56,491 nucleotides of DNA, taken from contig JALMLS010000003.1 in the NCBI GenBank assembly GCA_038496445.1, positions 1 to 56,491 on the forward strand, in the 5' to 3' direction. The DNA is from Trichosphaerium sp. ATCC 40318. Lineage: Eukaryota; Protista; Tubulinea. Under the pieces are notes generated by a model. It was not told the origin of the DNA and made no database searches. It saw only the letters and a program-made list of their open reading frames with translations. The translations under genes and the position numbers were made by a program. Positions 15,578-21,681 of this stretch are shown one piece after another; within the stretch, counting starts at the first letter, position 1; every line of letters starts with the position of its first letter.

Positions 15578-17630
15578 AATACCTTTTTGGCGACGTTTTA
15601 TGCATGGTAGGGATCTGGAGAATGCTAGAAATCGAAAAACTGGCGACTTTATTATGTTTTTTTAGCGTGCAACTGTACAAAAATTTCGCTTTGACACCAA
15701 TAACAACTTTTTCGCCAATGTTAGCCCCTTGCAGCGGTAGACTAGGGTGGTACTTATCGTGCTGTACGATGACATTAACGCAGGTGGCTGTTTGTTTGAG
15801 AAAATCCTTAATAAAAAGTTTATGCAAAAAAATATGTATGAGTGAATTCTTGGTTTTTTCGTTTTATTTCGTTTCATCAACCACAGCCTCTTATTTGTGT
15901 TGTATGCAGTAGAGCACTAACTGGATGTGCTAATCAATATACACGTTTTTGAGTGTAGGAATTGTCCCCGATTATCGACAAAAAAGAATATCGATAGTCA
16001 CGTTATTCAGTTTGTTACTCATAACCTGAATAGTTTCCATGCCTAATATTTGAAAAAATGGATGCTACCAGGTGTTACAATGTATTTGTTGCTTATTACA
16101 ATGTACTGAATGCTCATAGTGATGAGCAAGAATCAGCAAAAGAATGAGATTATCCAGGTCAATTATGTAATAAAAGCAAACAACATCGATTAGCGAGCTA
16201 AGTTCTCGTAATGGTCATTTCTACATGTACAAATAGTCACGTTCAGTTTGGTGAGTATTTGTGTTGCAGAAACAATGTTAACTACAATTTTGTTTAAGGA
16301 CAATTACAAACCTCAGAAGTGTATCAAATGACACCGCTTATTACATACAATGCGTTTTTGATAGTTGCGATAGCTTCCGGTTTAATAATCACGTGGAATT
16401 GGTAAATACGCTCTGATGGCATATGCCCAGTTTTTTACAGGCCTTTTTGGGTCTTACAGCACAGAAACTTCATACCTGATAATATTGCGCTTCCAATGCG
16501 ACGGAGAAGTACAACGTGGTTGTCTAGTTCACTTGTGTGATGTTCTCCGGGTTGTGTTACTATACAAGGAGCTTGTTTCGAGGTGATTCGGAGAAGTGAA
16601 TTGTGTACTGTGGCAATTTGTCGAAAAAGGGTCGCACCTTGTCCCAAGCTTGGTTTATCCCGCATCTTTTGGAAGATCAATGTCAGCGTTGGAAATAATG
16701 GAACAGTTCATAGATGTTGAGGCCTGTATAAAGCCATTATTGATAAGTGTGATTAGTACCTGTAGCATACCCGTCACAACCTTTTATGGCTCAGTGGGGC
16801 GGAGTCCTACATTGCCAAAAAAACGTTTTTTACACTGATTTTTTGTTACCACATTAAACCGTATGACCTTAACAGCTACGCGATTTCACAGACACGTGCT
16901 TTTTCCACATAGCTTCCAAATTAAGCAGTAACCATTTTTTCATTACTTGTGTGAAAAATTATTCATGTTCCTTTCATCACGGCACATGGCACCTATCTAT
17001 GAATTTTATAAGCTGTCCAGTTTTTGGGGAAAAAAAGTAACTTGTAAGTGTTATTTTTGGGTTTTTTTTTGCTAACAAGTTTTTTTTTTGTGTTTACCGT
17101 AAACATTATTGTTAGATGTTTTTTCCTAAATTCTGTTGTGCAATAACTTTTTAAACCACACAATATCATTACATACATGCTTAGTTAGGGAGGCCCATAT
17201 TGGATAAATCTCCACCTTAACATGTTGTTTACGAATTTTACTCAAAAAATACGAGTTATTCGCAGGTTTATTGCTTAAGGGTCTTCACTACAAACTCAAC
17301 GAAGAGATATACATGGTATCTTTCTTTAATGTAGTTTTGTTTGCGCGAAATTTCAACAAGCTTTATGCAGGAAAATTAAGTAGCACTTTAATGCATTATA
17401 TTACCATCTGCATCAATATGATAGTAGTATATACTACCCCTTCCCCTTTGTGGGGAATGCAAATCGTTGTTGTGGTTTCTTGTTGGGATTTGATTAGATT
17501 ACTGGTTAGCGGAAAACCATACTTTGCATTCAATATGTTGTGTACCATCATGTGTTGGTCACGTCACTTTATATCTTTAGACTATGTTAACAATTCTCGA
17601 CTGGAGTGAAATATCTGCGTTTATTAATGT

Positions 17631-20600
17631 TTACAATGCTCCAATTATGCTAGGTTTGCGAGAATCATCCTCGATCATCATAACAGATGCACGACCAGCA
17701 TGGTCTTTAGTACTGAAAAACTTTTCAGTATCAGGTTGTAAGACCTTACGCTTCCATAAACTATCCAAAAGAACCCAATAGTCGTTCTAATTATAATTAG
17801 TTTCAATCTGTTTTGTAGCTTCTCGTACATTTTCTTCAGCAACATGAGCGGCTGCGAAAGCATGAGCTTTTCCTGATTCAATATGGTTAAAGTATACTTG
17901 TTTAGTAGCAACTTTCTTAGCTACGAAAACATTAATTGCCTGAAGCACAATACAATAGAAAAAACGTACCTATGTCAACGAACATCTTTCTTGATGTTTC
18001 TTGATCTTGTCCTCGAGCATAACGATGGTAGAAACGATGAGGTACGTAATGTAATTCAGTAGATCCGGTATCCTTGTTCACGTGATATTGAAACTCTAGA
18101 AGAAACATGACTTGCTGTGGGCTTAATTCTTTGAATTTTTTCGTCAAGCTGCCTAAACAACATATGTTAGTGATTTCATCGTGTATAGTGCTTTAGTTGT
18201 ACTTGAGAATTCCTTTGGATCCGTGATATTATATATGTCATAGTAGCCCTTCAAATCAGTATTCTTAGAAGGCACAGAAACCTCCGAAGTATCTTTTTCC
18301 AAAGGAACATCGATATCTCCGTAAAAAGCACTTTTTGAGTTGGCTTTAATTATCTCAGTGATCTCTTTAGCATACTTGCTAACAAGCTTGTCGTATGTTA
18401 TTACGTTTTCTTTGGTGACATATTCACGTTGAAAGTACATGTTTGTAGCATGAATGAAGCAAGTATCAGATTTAGCCTTTGCAATCAGATTAATATGGTG
18501 TTCTTGCTCTCCAACAAAATAAAAATTGACGTACTTGAGGTTCATAGTAGAAGTCTGGAACACATCGTGAATTAATTATGGTTTCTACCATCTTGAGCTC
18601 TTCATCAAGTGTTTCATCTTCAATTTCATCAGACTCTGCTTCGAAATGTTCAATAAACTTCTTGAAAACAGCCTTCATTTTTGGAGATATCTGAAAAAAC
18701 ACAATTAGATTAACAGCAATCTCAAATCACGTGTACTTTAGTAATGCATTTTTTTTCCTTCACATCTTCTGGAAGTTTTACTGAAGAGAAGATACCAGTC
18801 TTCATATCCATACCGCTGTCAAAATTATTCATTTCGTCAACACACCATTGCTTCAACATAGTAACCATTCTTGTCAAAAGAACACCCTACAGCACTGCGC
18901 TTAGTCACAAAGAACTACTTCGAATAGTACCTTTCTAATTCCAGTGTTTTGATAGAATGTTCCTGGCTTTATAAATGATTCTGGCACGGAAGCAGTGTAC
19001 TTGTTAGCGCTTTTTTTGCCAGTCCTGTCTTCATAAGAAATCGAAAAGTTTAGAGGTGCATTTAAGTCGTTTGTTTTCATCTTAAGTAGCACTAAAATTG
19101 TTTAGAAGAGAGCCAATACTAATCCACTTTTGTTGTAATAACTATGTGCTATCGTACCTATACCACCTTTTGTTTGACCTTCGTCATCTGTAGGAGATGG
19201 AAATAGAGTACCGACGCTAATCAGACTTCCTACACAAAACAATAAGAAAAAAAAAGGAAACACAGACCTATCATACCAGTTGTTGAATTAGCTTCAGGAG
19301 AACCGTAAATCTCTTCTATTGTCCAAGGGCCTTTACAAAAGTACTTTTTAGTAAACTTATTGACGTGTTTGGACATACCTTTCTCTAAGTTGAGTTTCAA
19401 GTCAAAAACCAAAGGCGTAACCAAGTACTCAAACTCTTCGTCCAAAGTTTTATGGAAACTCTTCTCCGACTTAACAGACATGTAGTTTGCACCTCTATAA
19501 ACGGATTAACAACGAATATGATTCAAGACGGCAGGTAAAAAAATAGGGAAAAGCTTACTTGGACTTAGTAATAGCTACACCTAAAGTTGAACCACAATCA
19601 TATCCAACATGAATTAGAGAAGTATAAATATTCTTTTCTGATGCCGTCTTAATAAGCCCCAAAAGAGACTACATTATGTCCATTAGAAAACCAGACAACA
19701 CAAAACTAGAGATGTAAAAGCACATACTTGTGGGCTTGTATCACCAGCATTTGGCATGTCATCTGTAATAAAAATAACACGATTTTCATATAAAGCAGGA
19801 TCGCAGAGTTTGCAATTGTTCTCAAGCGTTTGGAAACCAGCTTTAAATCCTATTATGACGAAAGGTTAATCAGAGGTTTGAAGAACTCATTATACCTTTT
19901 GACATGTCTGTGGAGCCTCTTGTGTTAATTCTAAGAATTCCTTCATGAAGTTTGTTTAATTCGTTGCCTTCTGGAAGAGGTCCAAAAGGATGGAATAATT
20001 GCGTTTCATGATCAAACAAGATCAAACAAAAGTTATCTTCGCCATGCTTTAAGTGTCTTGTGAGACTGACAACACTAAAGAAATTAGGGTTGATTGAAAC
20101 AAAAAAGCTGAAGCTTTTCTTCTTACGCTTTATTGGCAATAGCCATCTTTGTCACATTTCCTCCCTGGAAGCTACTGTTCATAGAACCGCTAAAAAGGTT
20201 ATAAGTTTGGTGGTAGTACAATAAACAGAACAAACCTAATGTCTAAAACAACTACCAAGTTGAGCATTTTTCTTTTAAACTCAGCTTGGCTCTCGTTACT
20301 GTTTAAACCTACAGTCATGTAATGACAAGGTTCTCCGTTCAAAGGATCTATAGATTAATTAGATTATTGATTTAATACGACAAAGAAGTAAAGTAGAACA
20401 ACGTACCAGGTGATTGTGCAAACGCGAAAGTAGGAAAAAACAGCTCATCAGGTTTATCTTCTTCATCGTTTGCAGTATCAAAGAAGTACTTTTGGAATAC
20501 GCCCTATCACGTGCTTAGATCTATAAATATGTCTTCCGCACTATACGAAAAACAACCAATGCGTATCAAATACGTACCTCGTATGAGATGCTAGAGTGTT

Positions 20601-21049
20601 TAGGCAAAGTGTTATTTTTAATGCATTGAACAAAAGTTCCAAAGTCTCTTGCACCACCAACAGAAAATCCAATCGAAGGTGAAGGACCTCCCCTTAATCT
20701 AAGGACCATATGTAGAGTACTTTCCTAACATGAAGGGTCAGAGTTCTCAACTATTGCAGCGGTCTTTCTTTTTCGCTTTCAACAAAAAAGTCGTTACCTT
20801 TTGTATGTTGTAGTCTTGTGCTGAACGCCCATCCTCAAGCATTTTACCAGCAAATATCAACCGCTGCTGATCTGGTGGTATTCCTTGTTTGTTTTATTAG
20901 CACGGAGCTATTTTTAACAATCAAGCAGCTTAAACGCTGTACGAACCTTCTTTATCCTGTATTTTTTGTTTTATCTCATCTATTGAGTCGTTTGGGTCTA
21001 TTTCTACTGTAACCGTTTTACCAGTGAGTGTTTTAATGAATATCTGCAT
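17631..21049 (-). CDS. Ubiquitin - vWA (MIDAS) - Josephin-like deubiquitinase fusion protein
   Basis: Spliced in frame across many GT-AG introns: [11 protein letters not shown]...[13 protein letters not shown]...[14 protein letters not shown]; [35 protein letters not shown]; then [25 protein letters not shown]...HAFA...YWVLLDSL. Stop at 17631-17633. Confidence 0.8.
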
Positions 21050-21681
21050 TGTTTCGTTTGTCACTATTGTTTTATGTTGTCTTAGTCGTTTAAATGTGAG
21101 TATTCTATTCTCCAAAGCACGTAAAGACTGTAACTTAAGCCAGCACTCCTTAACCGACTTCAGAAAAGGGAATACAGCACACGAAATGTCAGCTTGCACT
21201 GTCAGTAAGGAAAACGCGTATCTCAAATAGGTAGTGCAAAATTCGGTAGCACCAAACGTACCAAAACACAAACCGAAACTTCTGCTCATCGAATTACTTT
21301 CGTCGAATATTGGCCAACCCACATGGCTGACAATACGGCACTATTGGGCCACACGGCAATGTTCGATGTACAAAGCTTGAAGCTACCAATAGGAGTGTCA
21401 ATAAGATATAGTAAAGCTTTTTGGAGTATTTGAAACACATAGTTGATTTTAAAACTTTCATTCCTTCGATCTAAACTTTCGGTATAAGTTGAGCTCAAGC
21501 GTTGCCCACAAGTGATCTATTATGCTTACAGTTTGTAGATTGACTTATTTGTCAACTCTTTGTTTGAGATCTCTTGTTGTAGTACAATTGTTAAAAGAAA
21601 CTAATACACAAGTTTTAAAGTGGTATAAAAAATTGAATTAATACAAGGTTGGGTTTTTTCGTTCAGTACAGAGCTTCTTCG

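Follow-up and report, generated by a model that had tools for sequence, protein, structure and literature searches.

A transcribed Trichosphaerium gene that joins a near-canonical ubiquitin to a prokaryote-type vWA module and a divergent Josephin-like cysteine protease domain

We analyzed a 56,491-nt stretch of the genome of Trichosphaerium sp. ATCC 40318 (contig JALMLS010000003.1, positions 1 to 56,491; hereafter the window), whose minus strand carries, from 21049 to 17631, a gene for an 810-residue protein made of three parts: a near-canonical ubiquitin, a prokaryote-type von Willebrand factor A (vWA) module and a Josephin-like cysteine protease domain. The gene is transcribed and spliced, the catalytic residues of the protease domain and the metal ion-dependent adhesion site (MIDAS) of the vWA domain are conserved, and members of the same family are found in other amoebae. 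The interpretation that we favor, with a probability of roughly 55%, is that the protein acts as a deubiquitinase of the Josephin type, that its ubiquitin-like head is permanent and that its vWA/MIDAS module selects the partner.

From an ATG at 21049 to a TAA at 17633–17631, the minus strand reads as an unbroken spliced open reading frame that requires no frameshift. The exons, which lie in alternating frames between 21300 and 17400, were assembled by donor- and branch-aware splicing followed by hand curation, and the model was then corrected with RNA evidence, i.e. contigs of public RNA assemblies from four runs (X1 to X4) placed on 17300–21400. Automatic splice models that minimized the number or the length of the introns were rejected, as they yielded wrong proteins. 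The curated coding sequence (17631..21049, minus strand) is based on the splice joints found in the RNA contigs and on full-length alignment with the homologue P0017 from Balamuthia mandrillaris. It comprises 19 exons (21049–20947, 20883–20798, 20724–20578, 20503–20407, 20347–20236, 20189–20127, 20074–19896, 19849–19728, 19668–19559, 19494–19379, 19330–19277, 19229–19158, 19091–18931, 18886–18737, 18690–18535, 18476–18203, 18152–17970, 17920–17829 and 17786–17631) and 18 introns, all GT..AG and 42–74 nt in length, most of which contain a CTAAT/CTAAC-like branch motif.

All 18 introns are supported by RNA, 15 as listed joints (CT..AC on the plus strand) and three by deduction. The listed joints include introns 18534–18477 and 17828–17787, which a first-pass annotation made from the DNA sequence had proposed to split the protease motif. 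Introns 1 and 2 were deduced from record 6 of run X2, in which the 86 letters between the two placed pieces are exon 2, and intron 5 from a loose contig end at 20236 that reads into the start of exon 6. RNA also placed intron 11 at 19276–19230, the initial model having 19267–19230, and it is this correction that gives the protein its length of 810 residues.

The transcript extends approximately from 21106 to 17602 (minus strand), as judged from the RNA contig ends and a template-switch oligonucleotide. Indeed, a loose end at 21106 in run X3 is the reverse complement of such an oligonucleotide, which we take to be the SMART one, and marks the 5' end of the cDNA. Reading the sequence from 21106 down to 21049 revealed no ATG; no ATG of the transcript precedes that of the initiator methionine, which is Met1 of ubiquitin. 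At the 3' side, contigs end at 17602–17614, immediately beyond an AATAAA-like signal, with zero depth farther on. Overlapping contigs tile 21100–17602 with an even depth inside each run, the vWA–Josephin boundary is bridged by spliced contigs in three runs (X1 record 1, X3 record 8 and X4 record 13), and the ubiquitin–vWA junction lies inside one exon, exon 3. The 19-exon reading frame and the overlapping spliced contigs bear out the earlier proposal of one gene and one spliced transcript across 21049–17631. The gene is native and eukaryotic, neither contamination nor two genes, since its G+C content (0.375) is the same as that of its flanks and since many of its 18 spliceosomal introns fall within the part of prokaryotic type. 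No paralogue was found within the window.

The sole database protein from Trichosphaerium, P0001 (MMETSP Transcript_30211), is labelled 'complete'; it covers residues 529–810 and differs from the window protein at one position, with Thr for Met in the SRKMFVDI stretch. Because it begins at the first Met past intron 14, P0001 looks like a truncated or intron-retaining contig. A few nucleotide differences were also observed between RNA and window. The window has A at 17691 and at 17712, where G is read in each of the four RNA data sets; both are synonymous third codon positions (Arg791 and Ser784, respectively). Run X2 shows additional mismatches at 17670, 18249, 18568 and 18626, which would be normal if its RNA came from a different strain or a closely related species.

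The C-terminal domain (residues 566–810; 17634..18567, minus strand) carries four candidate catalytic residues, each of which aligns with a counterpart in ataxin-3. Gln576, encoded by the last codon of exon 15 (18535..18537), is the candidate oxyanion-hole residue and aligns with the Gln of the ataxin-3 EKQ motif; Cys582 (18459..18461), the candidate nucleophile, aligns with the active-site Cys; His748 (17862..17864), the candidate catalytic base, aligns with the His of K-E-H-W-F; and Asp767 (17763..17765), the candidate third residue of the triad, lies in LLDSL and aligns with the Asn of LNSL (all codons on the minus strand). The Cys, His and Asp codons are exactly those to which the first-pass annotation had pointed. 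In a 19-member family alignment, Gln576 is conserved in 16 of the 16 sequences covering the position, Cys582 in 17 of 17, and His748 and Asp767 in 18 of 18 each. More generally, the E-x-Q, Cys, His and Asn of the first block are invariant, as are a His and Asp-Ser-Leu in the last strands, and the two motif blocks, E-x-Q-x5-C-x2-H-x2-N and H-x-F...W-x-L-(N/D)-S-L, match those of Josephins in register.

Josephin is also the only Pfam family that matches the C-terminal domain, in a window exon and in three other members (E 3e-4 to 0.05), with scores of 13.8–21.2 bits that are all under the gathering threshold of 26. The 91-aa window exon scored 15.2 bits (E 0.02) and the best member, P0018, 21.2 bits (E 2.8e-4). 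Whole P0001 gave no Josephin match against Pfam, and a single-sequence phmmer search of the domain against PDB gave nothing meaningful. A family profile run against all PDB sequences, by contrast, retrieved ataxin-3 only (E 0.05), with both catalytic motif blocks in register, which reproduces the likeness to ataxin-3 that the first-pass annotation had pointed out.

It had been proposed to compare a model of the domain with known Josephins by AlphaFold and Foldseek. The AlphaFold2 model built from the family alignment is confident (predicted local distance difference test (pLDDT) 91, predicted template-modelling score (pTM) 0.89), and structure searches of this model indicate a papain-like fold with Josephin topology. 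In Foldseek against PDB, the top nine matches are Josephin chains (E 3e-4 to 4e-3, probability 1.0), among which are ATXN3L–ubiquitin (3o65), the bacterial BpJOS and PcJOS, and ataxin-3 (1yzb). A search of Swiss-Prot models put ataxin-3 and JOSD2 on top, and in the Atlas shape search the best template-modelling (TM) score (0.51/0.63) was obtained with a plant Josephin cluster, second by service order. Josephins lead all five structure searches (Foldseek, VIA and Atlas included). The query TM-scores are only ~0.4–0.5 because ~90 extra conserved residues, with the motifs FYG, DL-x-GY-x-E-I-Y and ELSP-x-Q-x-LFLLEFQ, are present in the amoebal family, as compared to eukaryotic Josephins, between the Cys helix and the sheet.

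From the alignments and the model, we assign the C-terminal domain with high confidence to the papain-fold cysteine proteases, and Josephins are very probably its nearest kin. The initial assignment to the Josephin type stands as regards the fold, the motifs and the Gln/Cys/His/Asp set. It does not extend to Pfam membership: since the scores lie under the gathering threshold, the domain is a new, distant Josephin subfamily and not a Pfam-defined member. Josephins are one of the few classes of deubiquitinases, and their physiological logic is poorly understood.

The amoebal domain differs from its eukaryotic and bacterial counterparts in several respects. Its identity to ataxin-3, ATXN3L, JOSD1 and JOSD2 (PF02099, MEROPS C86) is only 11–17%; the third residue of its triad is Asp, whereas ataxin-3 has Asn; and the UIM/UBX partners of eukaryotic Josephins are absent, ubiquitin and vWA being fused instead. 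A Cys-His-Asp triad is what it shares with the bacterial Josephins (BpJOS 9f5t, PcJOS 9fpa/9fn4 and PaJOS 9g7g), in which Asp likewise occupies the third position (bioRxiv 10.1101/2024.07.24.604956). The bacterial proteins, however, are secreted effectors devoid of vWA and ubiquitin domains, whereas the amoebal protein carries both, and the paper that describes them mentions neither vWA nor amoebae (bioRxiv 10.1101/2024.07.24.604956). No sequence-level match was found between bacterial Josephins and the amoebal family.

An exhaustive phmmer search with the 91-aa Cys-bearing exon against 1.84 billion representatives retrieved only 29 proteins, P0001 among them, and no precomputed Pfam domain is assigned to the C-terminal region of any family member. 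Full-length homologues with the same three parts were found in Balamuthia mandrillaris (KAL6074867.1, i.e. P0017; 830 aa, 42% identical end to end, over 807 aa), Soliformovum irregulare (P0026, 799 aa) and Physarum polycephalum (P0036, 996 aa). Partial members come from Mastigella and from metagenomes, and a variant from the foraminifer Reticulomyxa filosa (P0021, RFI_03237) extends the family beyond Amoebozoa into Rhizaria. The protein thus represents a divergent Josephin branch, invisible to Pfam and set in a new architecture, that is shared by Amoebozoa and at least one foraminifer. Neither the ubiquitin–vWA–Josephin architecture nor its Josephin-like subfamily turned up in literature searches. 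The initial view that the architecture is undescribed therefore holds for the literature; it does not hold for databases, in which the conserved family is already public, with an annotation limited to 'Ubiquitin' (the only name given to P0017) and VWA, and with the C-terminus unannotated. Balamuthia mandrillaris is an amoeba that causes fatal encephalitis, and a lineage-restricted enzyme in this organism may, speculatively, hold medical interest.

Between the ubiquitin and the protease lies a module (residues 77–565; 18568..20685, minus strand) that comprises an N-terminal subdomain, the vWA domain, a beta-sandwich and a helical hairpin. Its core vWA domain (~residues 175–340; 19559..20258, minus strand) is delineated by Pfam VWA and VWA_2 matches on P0017 and P0026 (E 1e-13 to 1e-15); VWA_3 also matches these full-length homologues. 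Single exons of the window gave no Pfam match for this part because they are too short. As already recognized from the DNA, the MIDAS motif is intact, with D180-x-S182-x-S184, T258 and D292 encoded at 20243–20241 (D180), 20237, 20236 and 20189 (S182, split by intron 5), 20185–20183 (S184), 19911–19909 (T258) and 19763–19761 (D292), all on the minus strand. Across the module, the window protein is 40% identical to P0017. The fold resembles that of 4fx5, archaeal ArnB, ITIH1 and Sec23/24, vWA structures being matched at E 1e-17.

What the first-pass annotation had missed is that, as judged from direct alignment, this part is a complete module of prokaryotic type. In BLASTP, residues ~70–562 of the window protein are 39% identical to the prokaryotic (archaeal) VWA proteins P0041, P0037 and P0042 (E 1e-115 to 2e-118). 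When the 494-residue Balamuthia module was used as a database query, 663 proteins were retrieved at E<=0.001, the best 119 of which show 39–44% identity at 98–100% query coverage; every match that carries a name is a VWA protein of a prokaryote (DPANN archaea, Methanothrix, Chloroflexota or candidate-phyla bacteria). The proteins named 'Ca-activated chloride channel family/homolog' by JGI are collinear with the whole 490-residue module (39–44% identity, E 1e-105 to 1e-119), and the amoebal and prokaryotic modules share the GFSxGGAKD start motif, the MIDAS and the beta-sandwich as well as the helical hairpin with which they end. The differences lie at the ends: the prokaryotic relatives start with a lipoprotein signal and lipobox or with transmembrane helices and stop right after the hairpin, whereas the amoebal ubiquitin sits exactly at the position of the signal or transmembrane segment and the Josephin domain begins exactly where the prokaryotic proteins end. 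The Josephin-like family profile matches none of the 119 prokaryotic relatives. Furthermore, the eukaryotic copies have many introns and a much higher rate of evolution than the prokaryotic ones.

From these comparisons, the most likely source of the module is a VWA protein that was secreted by a prokaryote or anchored in its membrane. The outcome would be a case of domain chimerism: an entire extracytoplasmic vWA module of prokaryotic origin would have exchanged its export signal for ubiquitin and acquired, at its end, a protease of eukaryotic type. In an unrooted vWA tree, the eukaryotic sequences stand beside prokaryotic ones on branches of 1.7–7.5, as compared to a median of 0.24; because of these long branches, they could not be placed within a prokaryotic clade and no donor can be named. 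A single origin of the eukaryotic module is compatible with the tree, which is not to say that it is shown by it. Two other links were set aside. The apparent ubiquitin-like N-terminus of the archaeal P0041, whose alignment starts from window residue 21, is a spurious extension over the lipoprotein signal region. The Pfam families of Escherichia coli YfbK, namely DUF3520 and a vWF_A family at the N-terminus, gave no match at E<=0.1 and are not claimed, the prokaryotic link being one of direct alignment.

The ubiquitin domain (residues 1–76; 20686..21049, minus strand) is encoded by exons 1 and 2 and, in exon 3, by the initial 13 codons, and PDB ubiquitin is matched by each of these three exons in phmmer searches. 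The head is identical to canonical ubiquitin at 60 of 76 positions (16 substitutions) and retains L8, I44, V70, the terminal LRLRGG and lysines 6, 11, 27, 29, 33, 48 and 63, which agrees with the initial description of a near-canonical ubiquitin. Pfam ubiquitin likewise matches the heads of homologues (E 3.5e-27 and 6.7e-18). The Gly76–Pro77 junction (codons at 20683..20688, minus strand) is inside exon 3, and the linker to the vWA module consists of PSPS only, the conserved GFS(T/V)GGAKD of the prokaryotic homologues beginning 4–5 residues on.

Among the four full-length members, the identity of the head to ubiquitin is 79% in the window, 82% in Balamuthia, 54% in Soliformovum and 32% in Physarum. 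Even the two near-canonical heads, those of the window and Balamuthia, depart from ubiquitin at 14–16 positions; the Balamuthia head has K27M and K48R, and that of Soliformovum lacks K48. In Physarum, the head is a divergent ubiquitin-like domain without RGG, while the remaining architecture is kept. The residue that follows GG is Pro in the window and Balamuthia and Glu in Soliformovum. Ubiquitin precursors have a cleavable junction after Gly76 and a near-invariant sequence, whereas the window head has Pro after Gly76 and 16 substitutions; given the drift of the family heads from 82% to 32% identity, it is most likely not a source of free ubiquitin. In engineered fusions, Ub-Pro is the one junction at which ubiquitin fusions stay uncleaved (PMC9703124). 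The Pro at P1' in the window and Balamuthia, the absence of GG in Physarum and the drift from ubiquitin thus lead us to consider that the head is most likely a permanent ubiquitin-like domain that is never removed. As in the engineered fusions (PMC9703124), Gly76-Pro joins ubiquitin to the downstream protein; these are, however, artificial reporters, whereas the amoebal fusion is natural, conserved and accompanied by its own candidate deubiquitinase. A natural and conserved junction of this kind is of interest in itself, as it is otherwise known mainly from engineered reporters of ubiquitin fusion degradation (UFD).

We propose that the protein is a three-part cytosolic amoebal enzyme, the C-terminus of which would be an active Josephin-type cysteine deubiquitinase. 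Its body, a metal-dependent (MIDAS) vWA and beta-sandwich ligand-binding module, would pick a partner or substrate, and its N-terminal ubiquitin would stand in place of the prokaryotic signal or transmembrane segment. Probably kept uncut by the Pro at P1' and the four-residue tether, the head would serve as a built-in ubiquitin-like domain that docks the enzyme on ubiquitin receptors (proteasome, p97 adaptors), or alternatively would fill the enzyme's own ubiquitin-binding site. The Josephin domain would then trim ubiquitin from the partner selected by vWA. A working analogy for docking is provided by USP14/Ubp6, whose single chain starts with a ubiquitin-like domain and ends with a cysteine deubiquitinase, as predicted for the amoebal protein. 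The catalytic family of USP14/Ubp6 is USP, however; there is no vWA, and the ubiquitin-like domain is not a near-canonical ubiquitin ending in LRLRGG, whereas the amoebal protein is of the Josephin type and has a vWA module.

Several observations weigh against this proposal or parts of it. In Soliformovum, the Glu that follows GG would make cleavage possible. LRLRGG is perfect in three of the four lineages and the window copy has all seven lysines, neither of which a purely structural ubiquitin-like domain would need. In the full-length model of the Balamuthia protein (pLDDT 89.9, pTM 0.82), the only segment below 50 is the ubiquitin tail, residues 73–75; the model suggests that the head is flexibly tethered to a compact vWA–Josephin body, and the low confidence at the tail means that the junction could be accessible. 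At the level of the transcript, the RNA contigs include only overlapping spliced pieces and no uninterrupted cDNA across the whole gene. Finally, the direction of the transfer, from prokaryote to amoeba, is deduced from distribution, the tree being rootless and the eukaryotic branches long.

A tentative alternative, which we deem unlikely, is that the protein is a self-referential ubiquitin switch, with its own Josephin domain acting on its own N-terminal ubiquitin and ligand binding at MIDAS setting the state. If true, this would reveal a new way in which a deubiquitinase regulates itself, and a physiological role would for the first time be known for a natural Ub-Pro fusion. In one version, Pro77 would not prevent the head from being clipped at or before Gly-Gly, in the manner of the bacterial Josephin clippases that act on linear fusions; in the other, the head could be removed by no other deubiquitinase and the Josephin domain would erase the degradative chains built on it by the UFD pathway, which would make the lifetime of the protein a protease- or ligand-gated timer.

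Self-processing of this sort, in which the Josephin domain would cut off its own ubiquitin in cis or in trans and thereby release or activate the vWA–Josephin body, could take place after Gly76 or, in a clippase-like manner that bypasses Pro77, before Gly75. The intact LRLRGG of the window, Balamuthia and Soliformovum proteins and the apparently flexible tail, the only low-confidence segment of the full-length model, are in keeping with such a cut. So is the presence, among the closest structural matches, of bacterial Josephins, some of which are clippases and cleave linear ubiquitin fusions at the Arg74–Gly75 bond (bioRxiv 10.1101/2024.07.24.604956). The eukaryotic Josephins tested to date, however, have no clippase activity (bioRxiv 10.1101/2024.07.24.604956), Pro occupies P1' in two lineages, Physarum has kept the remaining architecture without RGG, and the head has fallen to 32–54% identity in two lineages. 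The removal by the protein of its own ubiquitin tag, as the first-pass annotation had envisaged, is weakened by Pro77, by the Physarum head and by the head identities of all four members, and we regard it as doubtful.

More doubtful still is the idea that the head is a natural UFD signal whose chains are stripped in cis by the Josephin domain, so that the lifetime of the protein reports the state of the protease or of the vWA ligand. Ub-Pro fusions are classic UFD substrates, whose degradation proceeds through lysines in their ubiquitin part, and few examples are known from nature (PMC9703124); the window copy retains K29, K48 and all the other lysines. Yet the K27M and K48R changes in Balamuthia, the missing K48 of Soliformovum and the barely ubiquitin-like head of Physarum argue against this scheme, and such lysine losses and divergence imply that a degron role is not family-wide.

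A C-terminal domain with a non-ubiquitin substrate, in the form of a papain-fold hydrolase or acyl-transferase (possibly C39-like or YopT-like and acting on the vWA ligand), the head then serving for solubility or targeting, is improbable as well: every sequence-based match is to Josephin alone, Josephins come on top in all five structure searches, both motif blocks are in register, and fusion to ubiquitin points at ubiquitin chemistry. As for an assembly or annotation artefact, or bacterial contamination with three parts that are not one gene, it might be invoked to explain the lack of a gene-spanning RNA contig and the label of P0001 as 'complete' at residues 529–810, but is very improbable given the single-exon ubiquitin–vWA junction, the spliced contigs that cross the vWA–Josephin boundary in three runs, the even tiling of 21100–17602, the identical fusion in three other species, the 18 spliceosomal introns and flank-like G+C content, and a P0001 start that fits a truncated or intron-retaining contig.

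Other members of the Josephin-like family depart from the three-part organization. P0019 and P0021 have a long insert, with two predicted transmembrane-like hydrophobic helices, that separates the strand of the catalytic His from that of the Asp; the active site would then be divided by a membrane hairpin. The metagenome proteins P0016, P0023 and P0025, which may be fragments, have a single N-terminal transmembrane helix directly before the E-x-Q...C block and neither ubiquitin nor vWA; unless they are fragments, they may represent a second, membrane-anchored architecture. P0006, a 1958-aa Tudor/FH1/BAH protein with 11 short matched stretches, was discarded as a low-complexity artefact and not a relative. 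In the Atlas search, Josephin clusters dominated by Nucleocytoviricota are among the nearer neighbors and are possible intermediates between canonical Josephins and the amoebal family; many giant viruses infect amoebae.

Upstream of the gene, the stretch 21238–21400 has an RNA contig of its own (X3 record 10), beyond the ~21106 cDNA 5' end and with near-zero depth in between, so that a neighboring transcript probably ends or starts within 21238–21400.

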